Below are positions 1 through 17,029 of a stretch of 17,029 bases of DNA, in pieces. The DNA lies in contig NW_021824993.1 in the NCBI RefSeq assembly GCF_006345805.1, forward strand, positions 1 through 17,029. Reading direction: 5' to 3'. The position numbers were made by a program, and so were the translations under genes. This DNA is from Octopus sinensis. Lineage: Eukaryota. The notes under the pieces are model-generated. The model searched no databases. It was not told the DNA's origin and was given only the letters and a program-made list of their open reading frames with translations. Numbering within the stretch: position 1 is the first letter of the stretch; each line of letters begins with the position of its first letter.

Positions 1-1430
1 AGTCCATCATTATACTCTGTCATTTATAATTTGACAAATTCAACCTCTCTTCTCTGGGCAACATATTTTCATTTTGATGCTTTTAAAATATGAAAATTAC
101 TTTGACAGTCATTGACCAGAACAAGATGAAGATCTCAGTCAGTAAAGGAATTTGTCTGGGGTCATCAAAGTTTGAAGTTACTCTTTTTAGTTTTATAAAG
201 TCACTAAAAGTCTTACGTTTTCTCAATTTATAGAAAAGTAACACTTTTATAAATGAGTTTATTGTTACGCATTAAATGTTAAACTAAATTTGCTCCAGCT
301 GGTCTATATAAACAGTAACCTATAGCTTTGAACAGCCTTATTATTTTGTTGTGTATTTACATGGCATATAATGTGTGAATAGAATTTCTCCCCCAGTTAT
401 CCAAGCAAAAAATCAGAAACTTATGTTATCAATTTATTTAGAATAATTTTGTACAAAGTTTGATACAAAATAATTTTGTTGTGTCTGGGGAGAGTCATTC
501 TCTTTTAGTGCCTTATTATTTAACACACTCACCGGTAAAATTTCGTTTTGCTTTAATAGTAATTATCAATTTCTGAATAAAGTTTCTTTTTATCTAATTA
601 AAATATCTTGATTATTTAATTTGAAAACAATCAGGTTGTTCACTTCTATCACAAAAGAATCCAATAAAAAGTGGAAAATACTTATGAATCTTCCTTTCCA
701 ATTCCACAAAAGTCTGCTCGGTAGAGCTTCCTGTCACATCTTATAATGTACATAAAGGTCTCATGTGTGTTACTTATTTAATCTTGGTCTCTGCTGTAAG
801 AACTTGAAATCTAATTTCAAATTAAAATAACAGTGGAGTAATATGAAGGTAAATATTGTAAGGAAGAATTGTACTCTTCCTTTATCTGAAGTTATTCAAA
901 AAGAGGGCGACACTGTGGCTTTTCCACAATCACATGCAATTAAAACAACAAATGTTGTGTCAGGATTTTTCAGCACAGCTATTGTTTAATTATAATTTTT
1001 TTGATTTATTTTCATATGTATAATAGTGAAGTTTTATTTTTACTGACGAAAATTTCAGTAATTAGTAAATAACGAAGGTCATAAAGTAAGAATATAAAAT
1101 TAAAATATAGTATATTGCACTCAAAACCCCCTGAATTTTTATTCAACCACCACCACTTTGGAGAGGCCTGTCTTAAACCACAACAGGACAAAGTGAGATA
1201 TATCCTTAGATACATCATGTATTATATAGAAATACTATCTCTATAGGATATATAAAGGGAAAGGCATCAATATATATATACCAGGCATTCTACTCTCAGC
1301 TAAAAATGAAGGTAGATAACTATCAATATAGCAGAAGATATTAAAGCTGTCTATATAACAATGGGGTTGCTTAGGGGGGGGGTTAGATACAACAACAGCA
1401 ACAACGTAAATGAACATTTCAAAGTTTGTC

Positions 1431-1436
1431 TTTATT
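1431..1436 (-). promoter_or_regulatory. Candidate polyadenylation signal AATAAA
   Basis: tttatt on the plus strand about 245 nt past the death-domain stop codon. The hexamer is common in AT-rich DNA. Confidence 0.3.
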
Positions 1437-1579
1437 TTAAATGTGAATTTTTAACAAAGGAGCCAAACCAGTGAAGGGATCACTACGTGGTTGATATACC
1501 TGCTAGAATTAGCAGCTAAATTCACACGATACCACTGTACAGAAGAGCATATTGGACAATGTGGTTGTGGGTTCTCTTT

Positions 1580-1666
1580 GGAAATAGGCATGATGGTCCT
1601 GGCTGGAATGGGTTTGATCATAAGTCTCTGTTTGGTCAAGGTTAATCTGAGGCTAAACAACAACAG
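1580..1666 (+). repeat. Probable retroposon 3' end with (AAC)n tail inside the putative 3' UTR
   Basis: GC-richer segment ending ...ggtcaaggttaatctgaggctaaacaacaac. It resembles a cephalopod interspersed-repeat tail from memory; unverified. Confidence 0.35.
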
Positions 1667-1678
1667 TTACACAGAAAT

Positions 1679-1878
1679 TCACTTTGCGTCTAATGACAGA
1701 CATTCCATCGCAGCGAAACATTCAGCTTCTTCGAGAGCTGCACTTAATGTTGCGTGTGTCCGTGTTTCTGGGTCGCAATTTTTGAACCATTCCTTAAGCA
1801 TCAGGTAGCCTTGTTTTACAGTGTCAATAGACTCATCATCAATTTTCAGTTCAGTTGTATCAACTCCTAAAAATATCG
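1679..1878 (-). CDS. Terminal coding exon: death domain, second part
   Basis: Acceptor gttgtgtcttttgcAG (1879-1894), TGA at 1679-1681. Translation IFLGV...QGYLMLKEW...THATLSAALEEAEC...AMECL fits the death-fold pattern LG...Y.ML..W...T...L..AL. The 5' part of ORF 1679..1891 in the track (MSFA) is intronic. Confidence 0.9.
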
Positions 1879-4800
1879 CTGCAAAAGACACAACAATAAG
1901 AAATAAATAACATAAAACGCTGTGTACTGTAGGTTGTTATGAATATAACAAACAAACTTTATCAATAGAGAAATAAAAAAAGAAATAGCTAAGAAACATG
2001 AAAAATATAAGACATTGTTTTCTATAGACAAAAATAACAAAGAGTTTGAATTAAACGAGATTTTTAAAGAAAATTAATTGAAAATTATACTTGAGAAAAT
2101 ATATGGTAAACGAGGGCAGGAAAACTTTTGTGAAGGCAAAAGTATATCAGAACCTCAAGAATTAACATTGACCTCCAACAGTGAAAGCATATGATCCATC
2201 CATTTCCTCTGCTCAATATTCTTGAGGGCTGTGGGGAAAGAGTCCTCAGGCACCTCCTCCATAGGGTCCTGTCAGAAGCATCCATCATTAGACATTCTGC
2301 TTGTATTCTATGATGTGAAGAACTAAGACTATGGATATCATCCAACCATTTCTTTCTTGGCCTCCCCCTCGGTATCCTGTTCCATTGGTTTGACTTTGAG
2401 AACCTGTCCTGTAATTCATTCCTGCAACACCCTGATCACATGTCCGAGGTACCACAGATGTGGAGGAGATGTGGTTCAACCTGGAGAGACTCCCAGATCT
2501 CTGAACTGTAAATCCTATTGAGTAACATTACTCCAAAGACCCTTTAGAAGAATCCCATATACCTGTCTTATTCTGGTAGATTTCAGACCTGGTATTCAAA
2601 AGGGTCATAAAAGCACTGTCCCTCTGTGCCATCTACTACCTTACAAAGTTCCCAAGAGGACACTGGAAATCGAATGATCAGTGATTGTCCAACAGTCGAT
2701 AATTCTAAGTCAAATTCAATCCCATTTCAAACTTCTCCAATGAACTCCAGGTTCGATCAATTCTACAGAGCCTATTCAGTTATTATTATGTCAGTCTCAA
2801 TGAGAGATGCCACCTCCAGTTCGGCTTGACTTGTGAATGTTCATTTTCTGGTAAATTCCCTTAAAGGAATTCTCTGTTTTCGCCTGAGGAGAATGATAGG
2901 ATTTCGCTGTGTCACCTTTATTAAATCTCTTTTTATTGAAGCATTTACAGACATATGTCATGTGGTAAAGTCATTGCAAAATGGCAAAATAAATTGGAAT
3001 TATCAGCTTCCAACACAATAACCCAATAAATAATCTGTTTGAAGAAAGATGCTTTGTTTTAGATGTTAACTTTGGTACTTGTCCTTCATTACAATAACCT
3101 AACAGTGAACCTAAAGAAAATGTGAAACAAATTCACTCACCTGTTTACCCTTAAACAATATATTTTAGTTCCTTCTTCCAAAAGATAATATTAAACGCCA
3201 TTTGTGTTTTCTAGTTTATCCATTATTACCAACCATGCTAACCTCAGTGGATATTTATGAAATATCAGGAATATCGTAAATAAAATTGTCATACAGATAA
3301 CCTATCAATTGGAAATGAGGAATGTAACTTGTTCTCATTCATTCTGACAAATAAAATAGATCAGGTGAAAGTAAAATATATAGAAATCAAATATACTCAC
3401 CTATTTGCCACCAATCACGTCCTAACCTCTTAGCCACTCTCAGAAGATCTTTCTCCTTCAGAACTGGACTCTCTGAAATAAATATTTCCAGCTTTTATAA
3501 TTGATTGTAAAACTTATTTATCTCTATAAATATTCTGTAGTTTATTGTTGTGGGACATTGTTATCATCAGTTGGTTGGCTGGTAACCACTAGGGTTTTGC
3601 TCAGTATTTTTATACTTTCCATTGTGGGACCAGGTAATAGCTCAATATTTAGGCCCGCAACAAAATAGACTAACTTTCCGAAACCTTGTTTCTCTTTAAC
3701 AGAGACATCCTACATAATCTAACAATGTTGCAATTATTTCATTCAATTATCATTTCATAGTTCTCTCTCTCCTTTCATATATCTGTACCAAATCTATGAC
3801 ATGTGACTGTCCTCTGAACTCTACACTTCACTAACCACCATTCTCCTCATCTTCTGCTAAAGTCCAATATCATCCAATGTGGTCTCCAAAGATCTCGTCA
3901 GAATTGCATGACACACCACTTCAAGTAAAATAAACGTAATACCTGTTCTCTTTGCTGTTGGAAATCTTGAATTTTATCATCCCACATCCCAGTTCACCTG
4001 GTCATTATCTGGTGCAGGGAATATTTTAAGACTCCTTAATACAGGTGAGCAATGATCAGTTCTCCAAAGATGACACAAAAAGTGATATCAGGTGTCCTAA
4101 AACAATGTACACTTGCACAAAACCCCATTCACTACATACAACTGGACATCTACACATTATTGCAGTGAAGACATCTGAAATGGTACAAAAGGACTGATAC
4201 TCAAAATATAAGAAAGACGGGAATACAAAGTGCGAGCTCCAAATCTTTTATTTTCCAGAATGTTTGGCATATTGTTTCTTTTAACCATCTTCGTTCTGTG
4301 ACTTGATCTCAATGCCTTTACTCTTATTGCAAAATTAGGTAGTGTACCATCGTCGTAATAGTTTTTCAAGTTTCCCTTTAAACTTCATCAGGGTTTCTCC
4401 TGCTATTTTGACCTTCACTTGTTTCTGCTGACCTTTCAGAAATGACTGGCTTCATTACTCATTTGCATTGAACCACATTCTTCACCAAGTTCCTCAGTCT
4501 ACCCAGTTAATCCAGAACTATTTGCATATCCTTTTATTTGTTGTTACTATTGTTATGTAATCCATTAATGTCTTCTCCAGTGTTTTCCTTTGAGCCATTT
4601 CTTATCAATCTGCTGATTTAAGTAACATCTCCATAACAATCACAAACCAAATGACTGATTTTGTAGAAACTACAGCAATTCCCGCTTCAAAATGATACCA
4701 GTCTATCGAGAAAGTTTTCCTCAAGAACTGCATATTGAAATTGTTATAGCAGCTCCTCATCAGATCCTTAATCTTTTCTCATATATAAAACAGGTCCACT

Positions 4801-7800
4801 GCTTCCATCAACAATTTGTTTGCTAGAGAACCATAAACCAGATCAAATCTCACAACATTCAATCCCTTTTAATCTTCTTTCCGTCTTGTATCACATCCTA
4901 GATTTAAGACACATGTTCCACACAGCCAGGAATGCCAGAGGATTCCAGTCTTCGAGATACTTTTAGTCCCATATTCTTTATTCTGTAGATTTACAGTTGA
5001 TCTCTTTGTGAATACAACCTTATAAATCTTGCCATTTATATTCAAGGTTGAAATTAGTCTGAACTAATCAATCGGTATTTGATTGCTGGTTTCAATGGAC
5101 ATTTCAAACTGTCTATGAATGGGAATCATTGCTTTTGCTTTGGATCTCCTGCATATATCCATCCAGTTCATCTTTATTGTATTTTAGCTTTCTGTTCTCA
5201 GTATCTGCAAACAGAATTTCCTTGTAGAAGTTAAAGAGGAGCGTTTAATTTTGTTGACGACATGATCATTTTTCTAGGGCTTTTGGAGCAAAATGTGCCC
5301 AAGGCCCTTTTTAAAGTGGTTGATGTTAGGAAAGGCACATCACCATAGAAAAGCCGGAATGTGTTCCTCATCCAATCAAGGCGGACAGTATTTGTTAATA
5401 AGAACTGACATGGATAGGAATCATCCATCCAATCGATAGGAGCATAGACATCAGATGATAAATGATGAGGGTCATCAGTGTCTATCTTGGAGAGAGAGGG
5501 AGAGAGAGAACGGTTGTCTCAGCATCAAACCTAATGCTTTTACATGGATAAAGACAATGTTTAGGGGATGTAATGATAAATTTATTATCAGTGAGAACAA
5601 AAGGCAGGGTGTTCACATACGGAACACATTTCATTGTAAATCTGTCACATTATGAGAGATATTTGCCTAAATAGCAACAACAGCAATAACCTATCAGTAA
5701 ACTTTGTAACTACATATCTTAGTCCTCCGTTTCAAAATACAGTATTAATTCTATTGTCTTCTAAATTATCCATTTACCGAACCATGCCAACCCGTTGACT
5801 ATTTGTGAAATTCCATTGATATCAAAATGTCTAATAGAATTATTATACAGCTAATATTTCAGATGTAAATTAGGAATGGATCTTGTCCTCAGTCATTCTG
5901 ATAAACTACAAATGCTCAGGTGAAGGTTAAATTTATAGAAATCCATGAGGTACTGTTATTTGCTTCTCACCAACTGGCTGTGATGTTGTCAAGGCATCCT
6001 TCACAGAAGTTGGAGTCTTTGAAATGAATATTTTCAAGTTTTACGTTTTATAGTATAATTTCATTATAGTTATTGATAATCAACACTTTATATTGTGGGA
6101 AGGGCATACAGCTGTAAAAACTAGTTCGTAGGGATGTGGTTGTGTACCCATGTAAAAGTTATGTTAACTTTGAGGGTAACAAGGTGTAAAATATCAGATG
6201 AGGGTACAAGATAATGCTATGAAACTTCCAGACAGACAAGTTTAAGAGAGTTAATGAATGATAGCTGATTAATTATCATGTTAATGCGGCGTTTAAACAC
6301 TAACTATCAATATAGATTGTATAAAATCTGTGTGAAGAACATGTGACATTTGTTACAATTAATATGGTTGTGTCTCAGCACAGTTGATATTATGGTAGTT
6401 CCATGAGAAACCATAGAAAAATGTAACCATTTCCAGTACCGAATACTAATGATGAATTCTTTTCTTGGTCAAATAACAATGACCAGGTTCCATGATCTAA
6501 TTTCAACAGAACAATCAAGTCGGAAGTAAAACCAAAATGTGGAAGACTGAAAACAGTGACTCTCTTACAATTGAAACCATCTCAAAGCCAACAATTGTCA
6601 GTATAACGATGTCTATATATGGACAGTAAACGTTATTCAAACATCGTAACAAGCGATAATTATATATATATAGTTAGAAAAGAGTTGTGAGTTCAAGTCA
6701 CACTGGAATCTCATACGTTCATTCCTTTCCATGTATTGCATATGTTAGCATCAATGTTTTGTTCAAATGTGAACATATGTTCTCTGTTCAATATGAATGT
6801 TATCAAAATCACTGAATCGGTTCCACAATCGATATTATTATACTGAGCTAATATTTATACCAGACAGGAAACTACTGTAACAATCTAAGACAAAGAATTA
6901 TGATGAGTTACTGGAAGACAGCATCTCATCATCATCATCATCAACATTCCAAGTTTTGTTTCCATGCTGGAATGGGTTGGAAATCTTGACAGGATCTGAC
7001 AAGCCAGACAACTGCACCAGGCCCCAGATGGTTTCTTTGGCATGGTTTTCTACGGTAGGATGTTCTTATTGATGCCAACCACCCACAGAGTGTACGTGGC
7101 CCCTTTTGTAAAGCACAAGTACTGGCATATTTAGCCAAAAGACATGTAAGACAAAGACCCCACAGCCGGGAGAGGGGTATTGCAAATTTCTCTCCCCGCA
7201 TCCTGATTCTTTTGTCATCACATTCCCTTCTCACCTCCTGAAAATGTCATCAGCTTCAGTGAACCAAACATCATAGAGTAGTGAGGACCGTCTAATTATA
7301 TAGAATGTAGCACAACTTGATTACTACTTGTGCTATAATTAAATGCTCCCAGAACACACTAGGAAGTGGTTGTTGGAAACTAGGAAAGATGACACCACAA
7401 GTTTGAAAGGAACGTTTGATATTGTTGGGAAATTGATGATCATTTCTAATGCTTGTGCGACAATAAAATATACCCACGACCCTTTATAAAGTGGTTGGGG
7501 TTAGAAAGGGTCTACCACCTTAGAAAAGCTGCAATGTTTAAGTGAGATGTTTTCCTCAACAAATGACGGTTGGCAGTAATTTCAGATACAACTGACTTGG
7601 ACAGTGATGACCCACCTAGTGTATGGGAGCATGGAGAGCAGATGAGAAAAGATGAAGATGATATCATTTATTGTATTGAAACTTTTAACCCAGCATCTTT
7701 CTTGAAAAGACGGAGAGAAGAGCATGAATGAGAGAGAGAGAATCAATGAGTACAATGAGATGACAAACAGGGCGAATATTCTCCTTAACGGGAGAGAACC

Positions 7801-10800
7801 GTTTCAGGGTTTATATTTAATTTTTGAATCTTTCTTTCTGCGAGTGAATGAGTAACTGATGTTTGCATAAAGTACATTTATTGGATATTCGTGTTGTTGT
7901 AGAACAACAGAATTTCTTTATAGCTAAGCATTCAAATGAAATATAACATTGGAACCTGTTCTATTGACCAAAATGGCTCAGTAAAAGCTAAAATTTATAG
8001 AAATCAATTATGTAATGTCATTCTATACTCAGCACGTGGCTCTTCTACTGTCTGGACCTCTTTGTCTTCAAATATTGGCCTTGCTGAAATAAATACTTCC
8101 AAGATTATACTTTATAGTAAAATTTCTTTAATGATCATCGATATTTTATAATTGTGAAATATTCCTATAACCAATAGTCAAGATTAACCGTCCCAAATGC
8201 CCCCACTCTGTAGGTAACGAAGGGCTTCTCCCTAAGAGTAGAAAGCAGATTGTATGAGACTTGTGTACGGACAGATGTACAACACAATAATGAAAGATAG
8301 GCTGTGAAGATAGAAGACATGCAAAGGGTTGGAGACAAATGAAGCCAGCATGCTCCACTGGATGTACAACATCGGTGTTCAGGTAAGTCACAGTGGAAAT
8401 GTCTTAAGAGCAAATCTGGGTATAAGAGTCATCCGATGTAGAGTTCAAAAGAGAGATCTTTCATAGTATGGTTATGTGATGCATATGGATGAGGTGATCA
8501 GCATAAAGAGATGCGGATCTCTAAACGTGGAGAGAAGCTGAGGAAGAGGAAGACTGAGAAAGACATGGGACAAAGTGGTGAGAAATGATGTTCAGATGCT
8601 GGGCTTCACACGGGAAGATAACTAAAACAACTGAGACAATCAGCAATTTTCTGTGCTTGAAAAGACCCAACTGGCTAAGTAACATCGAGGCCATCAAGGC
8701 ATGTCCTTTATGTGCATACCTTCCACCCCGCACACAATCTGTCCCCTAGGAAACATCTCCACAAGCTAAATTCCATACACCCTTCCCCAACATGATCCCT
8801 AACAAGATATAAAATGTAAGGTGAGGGTACACGATGCTCCTATGACAAAATAAGTTTACATTTCAGACATACAAATGTAAGAGAGTTAATGAATTATAGC
8901 TTATTAATTATCATGATAATTGGGTATATATGTGATACAATGGCACTGTGCTTGACGGTGCAATACTAGATATCAATATAGATTGTATATAATCTGAGTA
9001 AAGAACATATAGCCTTCATTACAATGAATATGATTGTGTCTCAGCACAGCTAATATTATGGTAGTTCCATGAGCAAAGGAAGAAAGATATAACCAAGTCC
9101 ACTGCCAAATACTAATGATTAATTCATTTCCTGGTCAAATAACAATGACTATCTTTCATTAAATAATTTGAACGCAACGATGTCAGTGTGCACACAAGGC
9201 AGAGTGAAGAGGCCTGAGAGAAGTGGTTGACATAAGAAGCATCAGATGTGGTGTACAAGAGAGACAACTGCACTGTATGGTTTTGGGTATGGATGAGGAG
9301 AATTGTGGGAGAAGTGTTGCACCCTAACAGTGGAAGGAACGCGTGGAAAGAGTGACCCAGAAGACAGGGCATGACGTGGTGAAACGACCTTCGAACGTTG
9401 GGCCTCACAGAGGTAATGGCAAGAGACAGAGACCTCTGGAAATATGATGTGATTAAAGGACCCGGCAAGTGAAGTGAGATCACAGCTGTAGCCTTACCAG
9501 TGTTGCATAACCACCCCTTTTAAAAGTACCTTGAATCACAGAGTGATAAGTTGCGCTTGAGAAGAATTTCTGAGTCAAGTAAACCAAAAACCAGAAATCA
9601 CAAATCAAAATCAAATCAAGATCGAAATCAAAATGCAAATTGTAATTATGGCCAATGCCAGTGCCGCCTGGCTGGCACCCGTGCCGGTGGCACATAATAA
9701 GTACCATTCAAACATTGTTTGTTGCCAGTGCCGCCTGACTGGTTCCCTGTGCCGTTGGCACATAAAAAACACCATCCGAACGTGGTTAATGCCAGCCCCA
9801 AATTCAACTGGCTCCTGTGTCGGTGGCACGTAAAAAGCACCCACCACACTCTCGGAGTGGTTGGCGTTAGGAATGGCATACATATGTGGAAACCTTGCCA
9901 GATCACATTGCAGCCTGACGCAGCCTACTGCCTTGCCAGTGAAATCGTCCGACCCATGCCACCATAAGAAACGGATGTTAAATGATGATGATGATGATGA
10001 TGATGAGTTCTGTGACCAAATGACAAAATTAACTCTATTGTGTCTTCTAATTTGAACATTATTACCAACAGCATTAATCTCAATGGGTATTTCATAAACT
10101 CACAGTAAATCGATATCTTTAATTCAATTATTATACAGATAATCGTTCAATTGGAAAATAGGAATGGAAGCTGTTTTCAGTTATTCTTTCAAGCACAATA
10201 TACTCGGGGGAAGAAAACCTTACAGAAATCAATTGGGAACTATTATTTTATACTCACCAATTGCCTGAGATGCAGCCCCTAATTCCTGACATGTAGCCTC
10301 TTTTTTTACACACCTGTCTTCAGACTTTGGAGCCCCTGAAATAAATATTTCCAAGTTTTACATTTGATATTAAAATGTCTGTATCTTTATTTTTATTAAA
10401 CTCTATCTTGTTATAGTGAGTCATTCAATTGGTGACCTTACTGGTCAAATGTTGACCATTATGGTTTTGGTCAATATTTCTGTACTCTCTACAGTGGTCC
10501 CATGTAATAGCCCAATGTTTCCACAATAAAACAGACTAACATTCCTAAATCCACCCTCTCCCTCTCTCTCTCTCTCTCTAGAAACACATTAAATATTCTA
10601 ACAATGTTGCAATTATCTCATTTAATTAACACTTGATAAGAGTTTCCTCTTAGCTTTGTCTTTCTTTTCTTATAACTGTGCCAAATCTATGGCATGGCAC
10701 AGTCCTCTCATCTCTAGAATTCACTAATCAACATTCCTCTCTAATTAAGTAAAACTAAGCCCATAAAGACATGTTCTTTATGTGCATACCCTCCACCCCG

Positions 10801-13800
10801 CACACAATCTGTCCCCTAAAAAAACATCCCCAACAACCTTGAAACCATACACCTTTTCCCCACCATGATCCCTAACAAGATATAAAATGTTAGCTGAGGG
10901 TACACGATGTTCCTATGACAAAATATGTTAACATTTCAGACATACAAATGTAAGAGAGTTAATGAATTATAGCTTATTAATTATCATGATAATTGGGTAT
11001 ATATGTGATACAATGGCACTGTGCTTGACGGTGCAATACTAGATATCAATATAGATTGTATATAATCTGAGTAAAGGACATATAACCTTCATTACAATGA
11101 ATATGATTGTGTCTCAGCACAGCTAATATTATGGTAGTTCCACGAGCAAACGAAGAAAGATATAACCAAGTCCACTGCCAAATACTAATGATTAATTCTT
11201 TTCCTGGTCAAATAACAATGACTATCTTTCATTAAATAATTTGAACGCAACAATCAAGACCAAAGGGTGAAACACTCAGAAAACTGTGCCTCTTTTAGCA
11301 TTAATATCATTTAAAATCTAACAAGAGTGAGAAAAAGAATGACTATATGGATGGTAAATGTTGTTCAAACAATGTAATAAGTGTATATTATATATAGTTA
11401 CAAACAAGGATTTGTGAGATCAAGTCACACAGGGAACTCATATTTAATTCCTATCTTTGTATTTTATGTCAACACCAATATTTTTAAATGCAAACAGATG
11501 TTCACCGTTCAATACTAAATTTAATATTTAATCAACGTTAATGATCATTATACTTATAATCTTAGAGATTTGATTTTTAATGTCTTTAATTTATAACAAA
11601 GTTATTCTGACCTGAGACATTCAGGGTACGTACCTAAACAACATATCATGACAGACATCTGGATACATAACAATAACAACAACAATAACCTATGAGAAAA
11701 CTTAGGAAAGACCTTAGTAGCAAAAGAAACAAAAACTTTCTTTTTAACTCACCTGTTTACAAATAAACAACAAACTATTTTAGTTCTCTGTCCTAAAAGA
11801 CATCATTAACTCTATAATGTCTTCTTATTTATCCATTTTACCAACCACGTTAACCTTGATTTTATGAAATTTCAGTGGAATATCTAATAGAATCCTTTTT
11901 ACAGCTAATGCGGAAACTAGGGATTGACGAGCGATTATAAGAGTTGAAGAGGCCCTGTAGTAAGGTGAGGATCGGCAATGAGTATAGTGAAGAATTCCGG
12001 ATAGAAGTAGGAGTTCACTAGGGATCATTCCTAAACCCCTCGTTTTCATCATAGTCCACCAGGCAATAAGAGAAATGACAAATCAAAAGCAATTCAAGAT
12101 CGAAATCAAAATGCAAATTGTAGTTGTGACCGATGCCAGTGCCGCCTGACTGGCACCTGTTCCTGTGTCACGTTATAAGTACCATAGAAGCATAGGTCCT
12201 TGTCACTGCCGCCTGACTAGTTCCCTGTGCCGCTGGCACGTAAAAAGCACCATCCGAACGTGGTCGATGCCAGCCCCCACCCCGACTGGCTCCTGTGCCG
12301 GTGGCTCGTAAAAGGCACCCACCACACTCTTGGAGTGGTTGGCATTAGGAATGGGATACATATGTGGAAAACTTGCCAGATCACATTGCAGCCTGACGCA
12401 GCCTACTGCCTTGCCAGTGAAATCGTCCGACCCATGCTACTATAAAAACGGACGTTAAACGATGATGATGATGATGATGATGATGATGAGTTCTGTGACC
12501 AAATGACAAAATTAACTCCATTGTGTCTTCTAATTTGAACATTATTACCAACAGCATTAACCTCAATGGGTATTTCATAAACTCTCTGTAAATCGATATC
12601 TTTAATTCAATTTTTATACAGATAATTGTTCAATTGGAAAATAGGAAAGGAAGCTGTTTTCAGTTATTCTTTCGAGCACAATATACTCGGGGGAAGAAAA
12701 CCTTACAGAAATCAATTGGGAACTATTATTTTATACTCACCAATTGCCTGAGATGCAGCCCCTAATTCCTGACATGTAGCCTCTGTTTGTACACACCTGT
12801 CCTCACACTTTGGAGCCCCTGAAATAAATATTTCCAAGTTTTACATTTAAAAATAAACTTTCTTCATCTTTATTTTTATTAAACTCTATCTTGTTATTGT
12901 GAGACATTCAATTCCTGTCGTTAATGGTCAAATGTTGACCATTATGGTTTTGGTCAATATTTCTGTACTTTCTACAGTGGTCCCATGTAATAGCCCAATA
13001 TGTCCACAATAAAACAGACTAACATCTCTAAATCCCCCCCTCTCTCTCTCTAAAAACACATTAAATATTCTAACAATGTTGCAATTATCTCATTTAATTA
13101 ACACTTGATGACAGTTTTCTCTTAGCATTGTCTTTCTTTTCTTATAACTGCCAAATCTATGGCATGGCACAGTCCTCTCATCTCTAGAATTCACTAATCA
13201 ACATTCCTCTCTAATTAAGTAACACTGCGCCCATAAAGACATGTCCTTTATGTGCATACCCCCCACCCCGCACACAATCTGTCTCCTAAAAATCATCTCC
13301 ACAAGCCAAATTCCATACACCCTTCCTCAACATGATCCCTAAATCCCTAACAAGGTGTAAAATGTTAGGTGAGGGTACACAAGGTCCCTATGACAAAATA
13401 TGTTTACATTTCAGACATACAAATGTAAGAGAGTTAATGAATTATAGCTTATTAATTATCATGATAATTGGGTATATATGTGATACAATGGCACTGTGCT
13501 TGACGGTGCAATACTAGATATCAATATAGATTGTACATAATCTGAGTAAAGGACATATAACCTTCATTACTATGAATATGATTGTGTCTCAGCACAGCTA
13601 ATATTATGGTAGTTCCATGAGCAAACGAAGAAAGATATAACCAAGTCCACTGCCAAATACTAATGATTAATTCATTTCCTGGTCAAATAACAATGACTAT
13701 CTTTCATTAAATAATTTGAACGCAACGATGTCAGTGTGCACACAAGGCAGAGTGAAGAGGCCTGAGAGAAGTGTTAGACATAAGAAGCATCAGATGTGGT

Positions 13801-14842
13801 GTACAAGAGAGACAACTGCACTGGTATTGTCATGTGTATGGATGAGGAGAGCTGTGGGAAGAAGTGTTGCACCCTAACAGTGGAAGGAACGCGTGGAAAG
13901 GAGTGGCCCAGGAAGACAGGGCATGATGTGGTGAAACGACCTTCGAACGTTGGGCCTCACAGAGGTAATGGCAAGAGACAGAGACCTCTGGAAATATGAT
14001 GTGATTAAGAGGACCCGGCAAGTGAAGTGAGATCACAGCTGTAGCCTATACCAGTGTTGCATAACCAGCCCTTTTTAAAAGTACCCTTGAATCACAGAGT
14101 GATAAGTTGCGCTTGAGAAGAATTTCTGAGTCAAGTAAAACCAGAAATCAGAAATCACAAATCAAAATCAAATCAAGATCGAAATCAAAATGCAAATTGT
14201 AATTATGGCCGATGCCAGTGCCGCCTGACTGGTTCCCTGTGCCGGTGGCACGTAAAAAGCAACTTCCGAACGTGGTCAATGCCAGCCCCCACCCCGACTG
14301 GCTCCTGTGACAGTGGCACGTAAAAGGCACCCACCACACTCTCGGAGTGGTTGGCGTTAGGAATGGCATACATATGTGGAAACCTTGCCAGATCACATTG
14401 GAGCCTGGCGCAGCCTACTGCCTTGCCAGTGAAATCGTCCGACCCATGCTACTATAAAAACGGACGTTAAACGATGATGATGAGGAGGAGGATGATAATG
14501 ATGATGATGATGAGTTCCGTGACCAAATGACAAAATTAACTCTATTGTGTCTTCTAATTTGAACATTATTACCAACAGCATTAACCTCAATGGGTATTTC
14601 ATAAACTCTCAGTAAATCGATATCTTTAATTCAATTATTATACAGATAATTGTTCAATTGGAAAATAGGAAAGGAAGCTGTTTTCAGTTATTCTTTCAAG
14701 CACAATATACTCGGGGGAAGAAAACCTTACAGAAATCAATTGGGAACTATTATTTTATACTCACCAATTGCCTGAGATGTAGCCCCTAATTCCTGACATG
14801 TAGCCTCTGTTTGTACACACCTGTCCTCACACTTTGGAGCCC
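1679..14842 (-). CDS. Partial multi-exon gene: 26-aa repeat linker followed by a C-terminal death domain (5' end outside the window). Core join: 14765-14842, 12741-12818, 10258-10335, 3401-3472, 1679-1878
   Basis: All five exons have canonical AG/GT sites on the minus strand and all junctions are phase 1. The spliced frame is open: (G)APKCEDRCVQTEATCQELGATSQAI-GAPKCEDRCVQTEATCQELGAASQAI-GAPKSEDRCVKKEATCQELGAASQAI-ESPVLKEKDLLRVAKRLGRDWWQI-AIFLGVDTTELKIDDESIDTVKQGYLMLKEWFKNCDPETRTHATLSAALEEAECFAAMECLSLDAK*. No transcript evidence, so inclusion of the 78-nt exons is inferred. Confidence 0.75.
2215..2860 (-). mobile_element. Decayed, internally deleted RTE-clade (Rex3/Expander-like) LINE ORF2 fragment
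   Basis: Frameshifted minus-strand translation gives MGFF*RVFGVMLLNRIYSSEIWESLQVEPHLLHI, LWYLGHVIRV, RGRPRKKWLDDI and ASDRTLWRR, which match RTE C-terminal motifs. A weaker RT-like stretch (STVGQ...SWEL) lies at about 2620-2860. Confidence 0.75.
3401..3472 (-). CDS. 72-nt coding exon: death domain, first part (ESPVLKEKDLLRVAKRLGRDWWQI)
   Basis: Acceptor tggaaatatttatttcAG and donor G|GTGAGT. Phase 1-1. The final G plus CG of the next exon gives Ala and restores the typical death-domain motif L..VA..LG.DW..LA..LG. Confidence 0.9.
3945..5230 (-). mobile_element. Decayed non-LTR retrotransposon reverse transcriptase of the RLE-type group (HERO-like)
   Basis: With stops and frameshifts: FRLISTLNINGKIY..FTKR, GIPGCVEH, NVVRFDL-YGSLANKLLMEAVDLFYI*EKIKDLMRSCYNNFNMQF, FSIDWYHFEAGIA..STKSVIWFVIVMEMLLKSA, TLMDYITI, SGK*KIWS.HF.FP. 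These align in order with motifs I recall from this family (FRTISLLNVEGKIF, GCIEH, DLANAYGS.PH, TTDW..LE.GI..GCTIS.ILF...ME...SA, AFMDDLT, PGKYKVW). The RT call is firm; the clade is less certain. Confidence 0.75.
5262..5470 (+). repeat. Old SINE/RTE-tail-like repeat, followed by a (GA)n tract at about 5489-5510
   Basis: Core aaagtggttgatgttaggaaaggcacatcaccatagaaaag with a GAT-like tail. Aligns end to end with 7435-7672. Confidence 0.55.
5971..6018 (-). pseudogene. 48-nt paralogous cassette exon P1 with acceptor AG changed to AA ((E)TPTSVKDALTTSQPV)
   Basis: Upstream intron reads cttgaaaatattcatttcAA versus cttggaaatatttatttcAG in paralogs. Donor G|GTGAGAAGCAAATAACAGTACC aligns with G|GTGAGTATAAAATAATAGTTCC of E1-E3. 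Frame is open. Confidence 0.65.
6927..7127 (-). mobile_element. RTE-type 3' end / SINE tail, inverted relative to the other copies
   Basis: Reverse complement: tgccagtac...ctctgtgggtggttggcatcaataagaacatcctaccgtagaaaaccatgcc...ggcctggtgcag...aacccattccagcatggaaac...(gat)n. Colinear with the last ~170 nt of the plus-strand copies at 9840-10005 and elsewhere. Confidence 0.75.
7435..7672 (+). repeat. Old SINE/RTE-tail-like repeat paralogous to 5262-5470, followed by (GA)n at about 7730-7742
   Basis: Core aaagtggttggggttagaaagggtctaccaccttagaaaag. It occupies the same relative position in the adjacent ancient unit, so it was probably duplicated with the unit. Confidence 0.55.
8033..8083 (-). pseudogene. 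51-nt paralogous cassette exon P2 with donor GT changed to CT ((x)RPIFEDKEVQTVEEPR)
   Basis: Intact acceptor ggaagtatttatttcAG. The donor position reads G|CTGAGTATAG versus G|GTGAGTATAA in paralogs. Frame is open. A weak alternative GT lies 3 nt upstream (would give a 48-nt exon). Confidence 0.65.
8200..8682 (+). mobile_element. Decayed RTE-clade LINE ORF2 C-terminal fragment
   Basis: VTKGFSLRVESRLYETCVRT...EDMQR..NEASMLHWMYNI...LRANLGIRVIRCRVQKRDLS*YGYVMHMDE...GRGRLRKTWDKVVRND...VLEKTQLAK*. It ends at the stop codon and has no 3' UTR. Confidence 0.85.
9179..10005 (+). mobile_element. 5'-truncated RTE LINE (ORF2 C-terminus + 3' UTR + (GAT)n tail), X-type copy 1
   Basis: DVSVHTRQS...IRSIRCGVQERQLH...MDEE...TLTVEGTRG...VVK.DLRTLGLTEVMARDRDLWKY, followed by a UTR with three 67-nt repeats and a (GAT)n tail. 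Confidence 0.85.
10258..10335 (-). CDS. 78-nt cassette exon E1 ((G)APKSEDRCVKKEATCQELGAASQAI)
   Basis: Acceptor ttggaaatatttatttcAG, donor G|GTGAGTATA, length a multiple of 3, no stop in the phase-1 frame. Splice flanks are homologous to those of the death-domain exon. Confidence 0.7.
10556..10579. repeat. (CT)n microsatellite, with paralogous length variants at 13040-13051 and 15070-15089
   Basis: Read directly; repeat number differs among the three units. Confidence 0.9.
11907..12488 (+). mobile_element. Internally deleted RTE LINE (RT core piece fused to the 3' UTR), Y-type copy 1
   Basis: MRKLGIDE...SKVRIGNEYSEEFRIEVGVH*GSFLNP..FIIVHQAIRE (RT segment just before the YADD box) is joined at about 12075 to the aaatcaaaa...67-nt repeats...(GAT)n tail. 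Confidence 0.85.
12741..12818 (-). CDS. 78-nt cassette exon E2 ((G)APKCEDRCVQTEATCQELGAASQAI)
   Basis: Same intact splice sites and phase as E1; 4 nt differences from E1. Confidence 0.7.
13727..14512 (+). mobile_element. 5'-truncated RTE LINE, X-type copy 2
   Basis: Same 5' junction (gaacgcaac|gatgtcagt) and 3' junction (gat|gagttc) as 9179-10005, but only two 67-nt UTR repeats. Confidence 0.85.
14765..14842 (-). CDS. 78-nt cassette exon E3 ((G)APKCEDRCVQTEATCQELGATSQAI)
   Basis: Same intact splice sites and phase; 1 nt difference from E2. Confidence 0.7.
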
Positions 14843-16413
14843 CTGAAATAAATATTTCCAAGTTTTACTTTTAAAAATAAACTTTCTTCATCTTTATTTT
14901 TATTAAACTCTATCTTGTTATTGTGAGACATTCAATTCCTGTCGTTACTGGTCAACCTTTGACCATTATGGTTTTGGTCAATATTTCTGTACTTTCTACA
15001 GCGGTCCCATGTAATAGCCCAATATGTCCACAATAAAACAGACTAACATTTCTAAATCCACCCTCACTGCTCTCTCTCTCTCTCTCTCTAGAAACACATT
15101 AAATATTCTAACAATGTACCAATTATCTCATTTAATTAACACTTGATAACAGTTTTCTCTTAGCTTTGTCTTTCTTTTCTTATAACTGTGCCAAATCTAT
15201 GGCATGGCACTGTCCTCTCATCTCTAGAATTCACTAATCAAAATTCCTCTCTAATTAAGTAAAACTGAGGTCATAAAGACATGTCCTTTATGTACGTACC
15301 CTCCACCCCGCACACAATCTGTCCCCTAAAAATCATCTCCACAAGCCAAATTCCATACACCCTTCCCCAACATGATCCCTAACAAGATATAAAATGTAAT
15401 GTGAGGGTACACGATGTTCCTATGACAAAATATGTTTACATTTCAGACATACAAATGTAAGAGAGTTAATGAATTATAGCTAATTATTTATCATGATAAT
15501 TGGGTATATATGTGATACAATGGCACTGTGCTTGACGGTGCAATACTAGATATCAATATAGATTGTATATAATCTGAGTAAAGAACATATAACCTTCATT
15601 ACTATGAATATGATTGTGTCTCAGCACAGCTAATATTATGGTAGTTCCATGAGCAAACGAAGAAAGATATAACCAAGTCCACTGCCAAATACCAATGATT
15701 AATTCATTTCCTGGTCAAATAACAATGACTATCTTTCATTAAATAATTTGAACGCAACAATCAAGACCAAAGGGTGAAACACTCAGAAAACTGTGCCTCT
15801 TTTAGCATTAATATCATTTAAAATCTAACAAGAGTGAGAAAGAGAATGACTATATGGATGGTAAATGTTGTTCAAACAATGTAATAAGTGTATATTATAT
15901 ATAGTTACAAACAAGGATTTGTGAGATCAAGTCACACAGGGAACTCATATTTAATTCCTATCTTTGTATTTTATGTCAACACCAATATTTTTAAATGCAA
16001 ACAGATGTTCACCGTTCAATACTAAATTTAATATTTAATCAACGTTAATGATCATTATACTTATAATCTTAGAGATTTGATTTTTAATGTCTTTAATTTA
16101 TAACAAAGTTATTCTGACCTGAGACATTCAGGGTACGTACCTAAACAACATATCATGACAGACATCTGGATACATAACAACAACAACAACAATAAACTAT
16201 CAGAAAACTTAGGAAAGACCTTAGTAGCAAAAGAAACAAAAACTTTCTCGTTAACTCACCTGTTTACAAATAAACAACAAAATGTTTTAGTTCTCTGTCC
16301 TAAAAGGCATCATTAACTCTATAATGTCTTCTTATTTAACCATTTTACCAACCACGTTAACCTTGATTTTATGAAATTTCAGTGGAATATTTAATAGAAT
16401 CCTTTTTACAGCT

Positions 16414-16985
16414 AATGCGGAAACTAGGGATTGACGAGCGATTATAAGAGTTGAAGAGGCCCTGTAGTAAGGTGAGGATCGGCAATGAGTATAGTGAAGA
16501 ATTCCGGATAGAAGTAGGAGTTCACTAGGGATCATTCCTAAACCCCTCGTTTTCATCATAGTCCACCAGGCAATAAGAGAAATGACAAATCAAAAGCAAT
16601 TCAAGATCGAAATCAAAATGGAAATTGTAGTTGTGACCGATGCCAGTGCCACCTGACTGGCACCTGTTCCTGTGTCACGTTATAAGTACCATAGAAGCAT
16701 AGGTCCTTCTCACTGCCGCCTGACTAGCTCCCTGTGCCGGTGGCACGTAAAAAGCACCATCCGAACGTGGTCGATGCCAGCCCCCACCCCGACTGGCTCC
16801 TGTGTCGGTGGCACGTAAAAGGCACCCACCACACTCTCGGAGTGGTTGGCGTTAGGAATGGCAACATATGTGGAAACCTTGCCAGATCACATTGGAGCCT
16901 GGCGCAGCCTACTGCCTTGCCAGTGAAATCGTCCGACCCATGCTACTATAAAAACGGACGTTAAACGATGATGATGATGATGATG
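16414..16985 (+). mobile_element. Internally deleted RTE LINE, Y-type copy 2
   Basis: Near-identical to 11907-12488, at an offset of 4507 bp. Confidence 0.85.
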
Positions 16986-17029
16986 AGTTCTTGACCAAAT
17001 GACAAAATTAACTCTATTGTGTCTTCTAA

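Follow-up and report, generated by a model that had tools for sequence, protein, structure and literature searches.

Can a row of short exons in front of a death domain (DD) form a spacer of adjustable length, and does this length matter for the protein? The question is raised by a stretch of 17,029 nucleotides (nt) from the genome of Octopus sinensis (assembly GCF_006345805.1, contig NW_021824993.1, positions 1 to 17,029), in the following called the window, in which six short exons precede the terminal exon of a DD. According to our analysis the window probably contains the 3' part of a gene of an Octopus-specific family, whose members combine ankyrin (ANK) repeats, a RING domain, exon-encoded cassettes and a DD, and in which tandemly duplicated mini-exon units encode a spacer of variable length.

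Exon anatomy of the locus

The gene is encoded on the minus strand. Read in 5' to 3' direction on that strand, three exons of 78 nt (U6, U5 and U4) are followed by exons of 51 nt (U3), 48 nt (U2) and 72 nt (U1) and by the terminal exon of 200 nt (Table 1). Each of the six short exons has a length divisible by three and is open in the frame given by a phase-1 intron on either side, and this frame continues into the DD frame of the terminal exon. The acceptor flank TTGGAAATATTTATTTCAG occurs six times with three or fewer mismatches, always on the minus strand (shuffled sequences give 0.04 occurrences), and the donor, a G directly followed by GTGAGTAT, is shared by U1 and U4 to U6. The initial annotation had described six homologous units with short exons of these lengths, phase 1-1 and near-identical splice flanks, and its coordinates and lengths hold on the minus strand. 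It had also reported broken splice sites, which are indeed present: neither U2 nor U3 is usable by canonical splicing in the window, the acceptor of U2 ending in AA (CAA) and the donor of U3 (CTGAGTAT) starting with CT.

Reading through the dead donor of U3 leads to an end, ...EEPRAEYRMTLHN and a stop codon, that shows 100% identity with the C-terminus of the O. sinensis protein XP_036354528 (P0027). In the same way, U5 together with its read-through is 100% identical to the C-terminus of P0031. For U2 no match was found among the annotated proteins.

The G+C content of the window is 30-45%, and much repeat debris is present. The list of open reading frames of the window contains no long frame besides the DD exon, the remainder being non-coding or repeat debris. 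Neither a RING or ANK match nor an Rfam match was found within the window. A RING exon hidden between the cassettes, which would mean two genes, is ruled out, as none is present.

Table 1. Positions of the exons, repeat units and repeated blocks in the window.
Feature	Positions	Strand	Remarks
U6, 78-nt cassette exon	14765-14842	-	peptide APKCEDRCVQTEATCQELGATSQAI; 1 nt different from U5
U5, 78-nt cassette exon	12741-12818	-	peptide APKCEDRCVQTEATCQELGAASQAI; 4 nt different from U4
U4, 78-nt cassette exon	10258-10335	-	(G)APKSEDRCVKKEATCQELGAASQAI(G); phase 1-1; consensus AG and GT
U3, 51-nt cassette	8033-8083	-	acceptor intact; donor dead (CT for GT)
U2, 48-nt dead cassette	5971-6018	-	acceptor ...TTTCAA (CAA for CAG); donor GTGAGAAG intact
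U1, 72-nt exon, phase 1-1	3401-3472	-	first DD exon, helix 1, SPVLKEKDLLRVAKRLGRDWWQI; flanks as in the cassettes
DD exon 2, last coding exon	1679-1878	-	200 nt including the TGA stop; DD helices 2-6; acceptor ttttgcag, phase 1
Young tandem array	8676-17029	-	units of ~2.0-2.5 kb with U4 to U6
Two-unit block, repeated	9723-12533 and 14213-17029		94.8% identity, offset 4490
Older unit members (within 3178-8156)	3178-3843 (U1), 5708-6097 (U2), 7971-8156 (U3)	-	
G+C-rich repeat element	9593-10006, 12071-12489, 14083-14513, 16578-16990		one in each young unit
Conserved block of ~150 nt	3132-3286, 5715-5855, 11744-11909, 16251-16416	-	

Repeat units and the cassette array

Comparison of the window with itself reveals a young tandem array, the units of which are 91-95% identical. 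Long and short units alternate in this array, and the last unit is cut by the edge of the window. The recent 4.5-kb duplication that had been noticed before is confirmed by the repeated two-unit block. The units of U1, U2 and U3 are older; they are 64-72% identical to one another and to the young units, the U1 unit showing about 66% identity with the units of U4 to U6.

The last 64 nt of the window are the start of a further unit. Judged by its register with U6, a next 78-nt exon would plausibly lie at ~208-285 nt past the window edge, in agreement with the initial annotation, which expected a fourth one at about 250 nt. Three 78-nt cassettes are splice-competent in the window, and their number is probably four or more. 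Each 78-nt exon equals an exon of the 51-nt type plus an internal duplication of 27 nt, which is visible in the peptide as ATCQELG and AASQAIG. The exons of 48 and 51 nt did not arise by shortening of the 78-nt type. The 26-amino-acid (aa) cassettes of U4 to U6 contain two or three cysteines in the spacing C-x3-C-x6-C, the first of them being Ser in U4.

The death domain and the role of U1

U1 and DD exon 2 together match the Pfam family PF00531 (Death) with 23.1 bits over profile positions 3-81 of 86, the gathering cut-off being 22.6 bits. DD exon 2 alone, or combined with a 78-nt cassette in place of U1, reaches only 13.6-13.7 bits. The closest solved sequence to the product of U1 and the terminal exon (SPVLKEKDLLRVAKRLGRDWWQIAIFLGV...ECLSLDAK) is the DD of PIDD (2of5, 9tuf; E=0.002), with an alignment that starts in U1 (LLSVAGRLGLDWPAVALHLGV vs LLRVAKRLGRDWWQIAIFLGV) and covers U1 and most of exon 2. 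Because the Pfam score falls without U1 and the alignment with the PIDD DD spans it, U1 does not belong to the linker cassettes; as the exon for DD helix 1, it is required for the whole domain. Distant members of the family score 44-45 bits with the Pfam Death profile.

This limits the proposal that any of the cassettes can be skipped freely. The reading frame is kept as proposed, but U1 contributes DD helix 1 (23.1 vs 13.6 bits), and U2 and U3 are splice-dead in any case.

U1 is nevertheless a relative of the cassettes. The homology between its unit and those of the cassettes extends over the entire exon, and the first 42 nt of its exon body show 55-60% ungapped identity with the 51-nt cassettes U3 and L002_Ux, a value reached by at most one in 20000 shuffles. 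The cassettes are without the helix-1 residues GRDWW, and no Pfam match was found in them. Our inference is that tandem duplication of the unit with DD exon 1 gave rise to the cassettes, which lost the helix-1 residues afterwards; the duplication would thus have proceeded in the direction from DD exon 1 to the cassettes.

A protein family restricted to Octopus

A search with the conceptual product of the window revealed 27 homologues, all from Octopus vulgaris or O. sinensis. These proteins contain a C3HC4_3 RING (PF13920), often with ankyrin repeats before it, then a spacer and then the same DD. The spacer comprises 0-4 copies of APKxEDRCVQTEATCQELGAASQAI or 17-aa cassettes. With a RING-DD member as query, a HMMER search of the whole library gave 58 clusters, and all ten that were looked up are from Octopus, including O. 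bimaculoides. Up to six 17-aa cassettes are located between RING and DD in more distant members, and the cassette architecture persists in both O. bimaculoides and the O. vulgaris group. The five full-length relatives examined consist of ANK repeats, one zf-C3HC4_3 and one Death domain; neither a MIB_HERC2 nor a ZZ domain was found in these five, and both are likewise absent from the window. Members of the family are already present in public annotations, where they received the label "MIB2-like" from RefSeq and Blast2GO, and full-text searches of the literature revealed no description of an octopus ANK-RING-DD family.

Several features assign the window to this family. The DD subtype of the window (...NCDPETRTHATL...AECFAAMECLSLDAK), divided between a 72-nt exon and a terminal one of ~200 nt, shows 85-94% protein identity to family members, and the same exon split is found at the related loci L001, L002 and L005. 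DD exon 2 (translation IFLGVDTTELK...ECLSLDAK, then stop) received 70 tblastn matches from family proteins with identities of up to 94%. Like other members, the window has phase 1-1 cassettes of 51 and 78 nt with the flanks ttggaaatatttatttcag and gtgagtata, which lie 5' of DD exon 1. For P0005, no record as a separate gene was found; this is expected if P0005 is a shorter product of the P0001 gene, without proving that.

The same DD subtype is also found at the end of an octopus protein that resembles adhesion G-protein-coupled receptors and contains leucine-rich repeats and seven transmembrane segments (P0064 and P0093 from O. bimaculoides, and P0044). There the DD is preceded by a long (STSQQ/PSTSQHE)n repeat and not by 17- or 26-aa cassettes. 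Therefore this DD has been joined to unrelated N-termini via different repetitive spacers. Some of the 17-aa cassettes of P0057, P0043 and P0056 carry a CPxC motif (ECPKCKEKAVKTVVESF, ECPRCREKTVKTVAESF), with up to four in a row.

Copy number at related loci

The number and the state of the cassettes differ between the loci of close relatives. L001, the gene of CAJ1099327 from O. vulgaris, is 96.7% identical to positions 1-7962 of the window and contains the RING exon and three exons of 78 nt as well as the dead U2, U1 and DD exon 2; its U3 was removed by a clean deletion of 993 nt. L003 from O. sinensis is 97.0% identical to positions 3903-9177 and comprises the RING exon, a single exon of 78 nt, U3, which again has the CT donor, and the dead U2. 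At L002 (O. sinensis LOC115230672) there is no 78-nt unit; U3 has an intact GT donor and is annotated as an alternative exon, followed by the dead U2, U1 and DD exon 2. L004 contains four 78-nt exons. At L005 a single exon of 78 nt is accompanied by five of 51 nt and by a DD exon 1 of 72 nt, and all of these have the same flanks. At L001, L003, L004 and L005 each repeat is a separate exon of 78 or 51 nt with these flanks. In the annotations, L001 and L003 are expressed genes in which the homologous exons are used.

The close loci thus contain 0, 1, 3 or 4 copies of the 78-nt exon, and the window at least three. Cassettes were lost in three ways, by acceptor mutation, by donor mutation and by deletion. 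The CAA acceptor of U2 is common to L001, L002 and L003. Deleted exons, which had been suggested for the array of the window, are not visible there; the loss of U3 in O. vulgaris L001 is the only case. The 'VKK' subtype of the 78-nt exon is nearest to the DD in the window (U4) and nearest to the RING in O. vulgaris L001 (17765-17842).

Annotated isoforms and read-through of cassette donors

For O. vulgaris, O. sinensis and O. bimaculoides the annotations contain sets of isoforms that differ by a single cassette. In O. vulgaris, CAJ1099327 has three repeats and CAJ1099329 two, and in O. sinensis XP_036354468 and XP_036354469 are one cassette apart. Among the isoforms of LOC115230672, X1 contains U3 and U1, X2 only U1, and X3 only U3, with U1 being skipped. 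P0012 and P0010 differ by 17 aa, and the isoforms of O. bimaculoides comprise 563, 545 and 528 aa in one set and 424 and 407 aa in another. The split codon at the isoform junctions changes as a phase-1 intron predicts. In the O. vulgaris annotation, splice forms were added with PASA from Iso-Seq and RNA-seq data (PMC10700109).

Several models have an end that results from read-through of a cassette donor (...SQAIGEYKIIVPN and stop). The 30 nt that lie 3' of each 78-nt exon (10228-10257, 12711-12740 and 14735-14764 on the minus strand) are invariant in ten copies from four loci, and their read-through gives GEYKIIVPN followed by a stop codon. P0024, P0026, P0030 and P0031 end in this way, without a DD. 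These ends may represent real isoforms that lack the DD or artefacts of annotation.

A proposed spacer built from duplicated exons

The proposed mechanism is as follows. Proteins of the family consist of N-terminal ankyrin repeats, one C3HC4 RING, a spacer of short peptide repeats and a C-terminal DD. One spacer peptide is encoded by each exon of 51 nt, or of 78 nt in the subfamily of the window, and each exon lies within a genomic unit of 1-2.5 kb. The units would have multiplied through tandem duplication and unequal crossing-over, with the carrier of the first DD exon as the presumed founding unit. Phase-1 introns with near-identical splice signals border all of the cassettes as well as the RING exon and DD exon 1; because these are shared, gain, loss or skipping of a cassette leaves the DD in frame. 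The length of the spacer would change as units are gained and lost, and for relatives the skipping of exons is annotated. The anatomy and the homology of the units are seen directly, as are the homologous exons in annotated proteins, the different copy numbers of close loci and the annotated isoforms that are one cassette apart. The resulting protein may act as a RING E3 ligase that attaches to death-fold complexes via its DD, and the spacer may set the distance between RING and DD and its flexibility. Human MIB2 acts on death-receptor complexes via RIPK1 and cFLIP (PMC7815719). This role is the only outside support for the functional picture.

Several points weigh against this explanation. 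Expression of the window locus and inclusion of its cassettes are predictions. The isoform sets described above are all gene models, and they come from relatives. The window's own product is absent from the protein collection, the best match being 87% identical. The 5' end of the gene would lie beyond position 17029, and its linkage to RING and ANK exons is taken from relatives with ~97% identical DNA (L001 and L003). The order of the cassette subtypes is reversed between the window and L001, which are ~97% identical in their 3' parts; this clouds strict orthology and suggests unequal crossing-over or gene conversion within the array rather than simple orthology. The ratio of non-synonymous to synonymous variation (pN/pS) of the 78-nt exon is about 1.0, and its proportion of variable sites (11/78) is like that of the flanking intron (81/526), where these figures refer to ten of eleven 78-nt copies, namely those with 300 nt of flank on both sides. 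All eleven 78-nt copies from four loci keep AG, GT, length and an open frame, but because the copies are young and pN/pS is ~1.0, intact frames and splice sites are weak evidence of constraint. Finally, an AlphaFold2 model of the closest relative, P0001, which was calculated from a family alignment of 23 sequences, has a mean predicted local distance difference test score of 50.7. The DD part of the model is helical with low confidence, there is a weak hint of one helix per repeat, and the model is too poor to tell the fold of the spacer.

Purifying selection on the cassette peptide was thus not detected in the ten copies. The 30 nt next to the splice sites on each side have 2/59 variable sites compared to 11/78 in the exon (p=0.04). 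The cassette peptide thus looks unconstrained, in contrast to the apparently conserved splice signals. Selection, if there is any, would act on the frame, on the competence for splicing and perhaps on the length. The initial annotation had supposed that the locus tunes its linker length by copy number or splicing. Variation in length is seen, although only in relatives, as different copy numbers and single-cassette isoforms, whereas tuning receives no support from a pN/pS of ~1.0.

Alternative explanations

A neutral spacer is given a chance that falls just short of even. Here the cassettes are spliced in, but their number and occasional skipping are non-adaptive: unequal crossing-over and noise in splicing would produce them in a linker that tolerates such changes and is probably disordered, and a tuning system would not exist. 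The values of pN/pS and the equal variability of exon and intron are in line with this, as are the free variation in number (0 to 6) and type of cassettes among paralogues, the persistence of dead cassettes with no obvious consequence, and the cysteine pattern, which differs between cassette types. The conserved splice-proximal flanks, the eleven intact young copies and the architecture kept across O. bimaculoides and the O. vulgaris group point in the other direction, although all of them are compatible with neutrality. A spacer that is neutral and tolerated agrees with the data roughly as well as one that is adaptively tuned.

It is unlikely that the window copy is an unexpressed or decaying paralogue in which the 78-nt exons are intact only through their young duplications. 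The lack of an exact protein of this locus in the collection would agree with decay, and so would the two dead units among six, the missing selection signal on the peptide, and the many truncated or read-through models of the family that end with ...GEYKIIVPN or ...AEYRMTLHN and a stop codon. However, the DD frame, U1 and their splice sites are all intact, and the closest loci (~97%) are annotated as expressed with the homologous exons in use.

We regard it as rather improbable that the array serves innate-immune or cell-death signalling of octopus as a regulated module of diversification. In such a module the cassette number would be set by tissue or challenge and would tune the reach of the RING to substrates in a DD-nucleated complex; copies would turn over rapidly between individuals and species under selection, and read-through of the donor (...GEYKIIVPN and stop) would be a switch to decoys without a DD.

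The claim that the array changes the valency of a death-domain signalling platform is very hard to maintain, since every family protein seen has a single DD and the cassettes have no Pfam match and lost the GRDWW of helix 1; nothing was found in its favour apart from the general knowledge that death domains oligomerise. Hardly any probability remains for 78-nt exons being exonised fragments of transposable elements with chance splice sites: repeat debris abounds in the units, with (GAT)n tracts and a SINE-like element that contains an internal repeat of 67 nt, but tandem copies in this gene family, always between RING and DD, are the only places where the exon with its flanks was found, the exons are homologous to DD exon 1, and the exon itself gives no Rfam or transposable-element protein signal.

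Comparison with known systems

The spacer of probably exon-duplicated origin that we favour for the window has well known counterparts. The PEVK exons of titin, the variable exons v2-v10 of CD44 and the fibronectin type III repeats of tenascin are symmetrical, alternatively spliced cassette arrays that belong to the class of tandem exon duplications. The octopus array resembles them in its adjacent homologous exons of the same symmetrical phase, which encode one short spacer repeat each, and in a number that varies by paralogue and species; single exons are skipped in isoforms, which for octopus refers to annotated relatives. In contrast to these arrays, the octopus protein is an intracellular RING-DD protein, its cassettes comprise 17 or 26 aa, and its splicing is predicted. 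Its units are young, with 91-95% identity including the introns, and the founder was apparently the first exon of the adjacent folded domain and not a spacer exon.

With MIB2 and Mind bomb the octopus relatives share ankyrin repeats followed by a C3HC4_3 RING. While those proteins contain MIB_HERC2 and ZZ domains and two C-terminal RINGs, the octopus relatives have one RING and a C-terminal DD. As MIB_HERC2 and ZZ are absent from the full-length members, the label "MIB2-like" reflects a partial similarity only. The similarity to PIDD1 is weak and confined to the DD, the rest of the octopus protein being unrelated to the leucine-rich repeats and ZU5-UPA of PIDD1. E3 ligases with a death-fold domain are represented by cIAP1/2 (BIR-CARD-RING), and proteins with ANK repeats and a DD by ANKDD1 and NF-kB p100/p105. 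Like these, the octopus proteins carry a death-fold domain on the same chain as a RING or ankyrin repeats. The order of the domains and the death-fold subfamily differ, and a spacer of cassette exons is not known from cIAP1/2, ANKDD1 or NF-kB p100/p105.

The pattern is a fairly ordinary outcome of tandem exon duplication, and general concepts are unchanged. As a clean and young example, the locus illustrates how tandem duplication of a symmetrical exon builds a spacer of variable length in a signalling protein, with births, three kinds of death and exon skipping all visible among close relatives. Particular to it are the very short cassettes, the young array, an apparent descent from the first exon of the neighbouring domain and an architecture restricted to the lineage. 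An ANK-RING-DD protein restricted to Octopus would tie an E3 ligase directly to death-fold complexes, which is relevant for immunity and cell death in cephalopods.

Repeated blocks within the units

Each young unit contains a G+C-rich repeat element (Table 1) that starts with an (AAATCA)n head, continues with two to three internal repeats of 67 nt (GCCAGTGCCGCCTGACTGGCACC...GGCACATAAAAA...) and ends with a (GAT)n tail. It had no match in Rfam or in the phage collection, and it is probably an octopus element similar to short interspersed nuclear elements (SINEs).

A conserved block of ~150 nt is located 3' of the cassette exon in old and young units, and a further copy was found at positions 12000-12130 of L002. 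The block ends with ...TTGTAAACAG directly followed by GTGAGT, a perfect donor-like junction, and has stops in the upstream frames. Either a relic exon or a piece of a repeat element may be present here. The O. sinensis model P0028 (LOC118760885) starts in the repeat-derived interval between U3 and U2 (MFWFTEADDIFRR, donor GGTGAG) and splices to an exon of the U1 type. The homologue of this start lies at ~7227-7270 on the minus strand of the window, where a deletion of 1 nt shifts the frame, and its counterpart in L002 at ~14500-14550.

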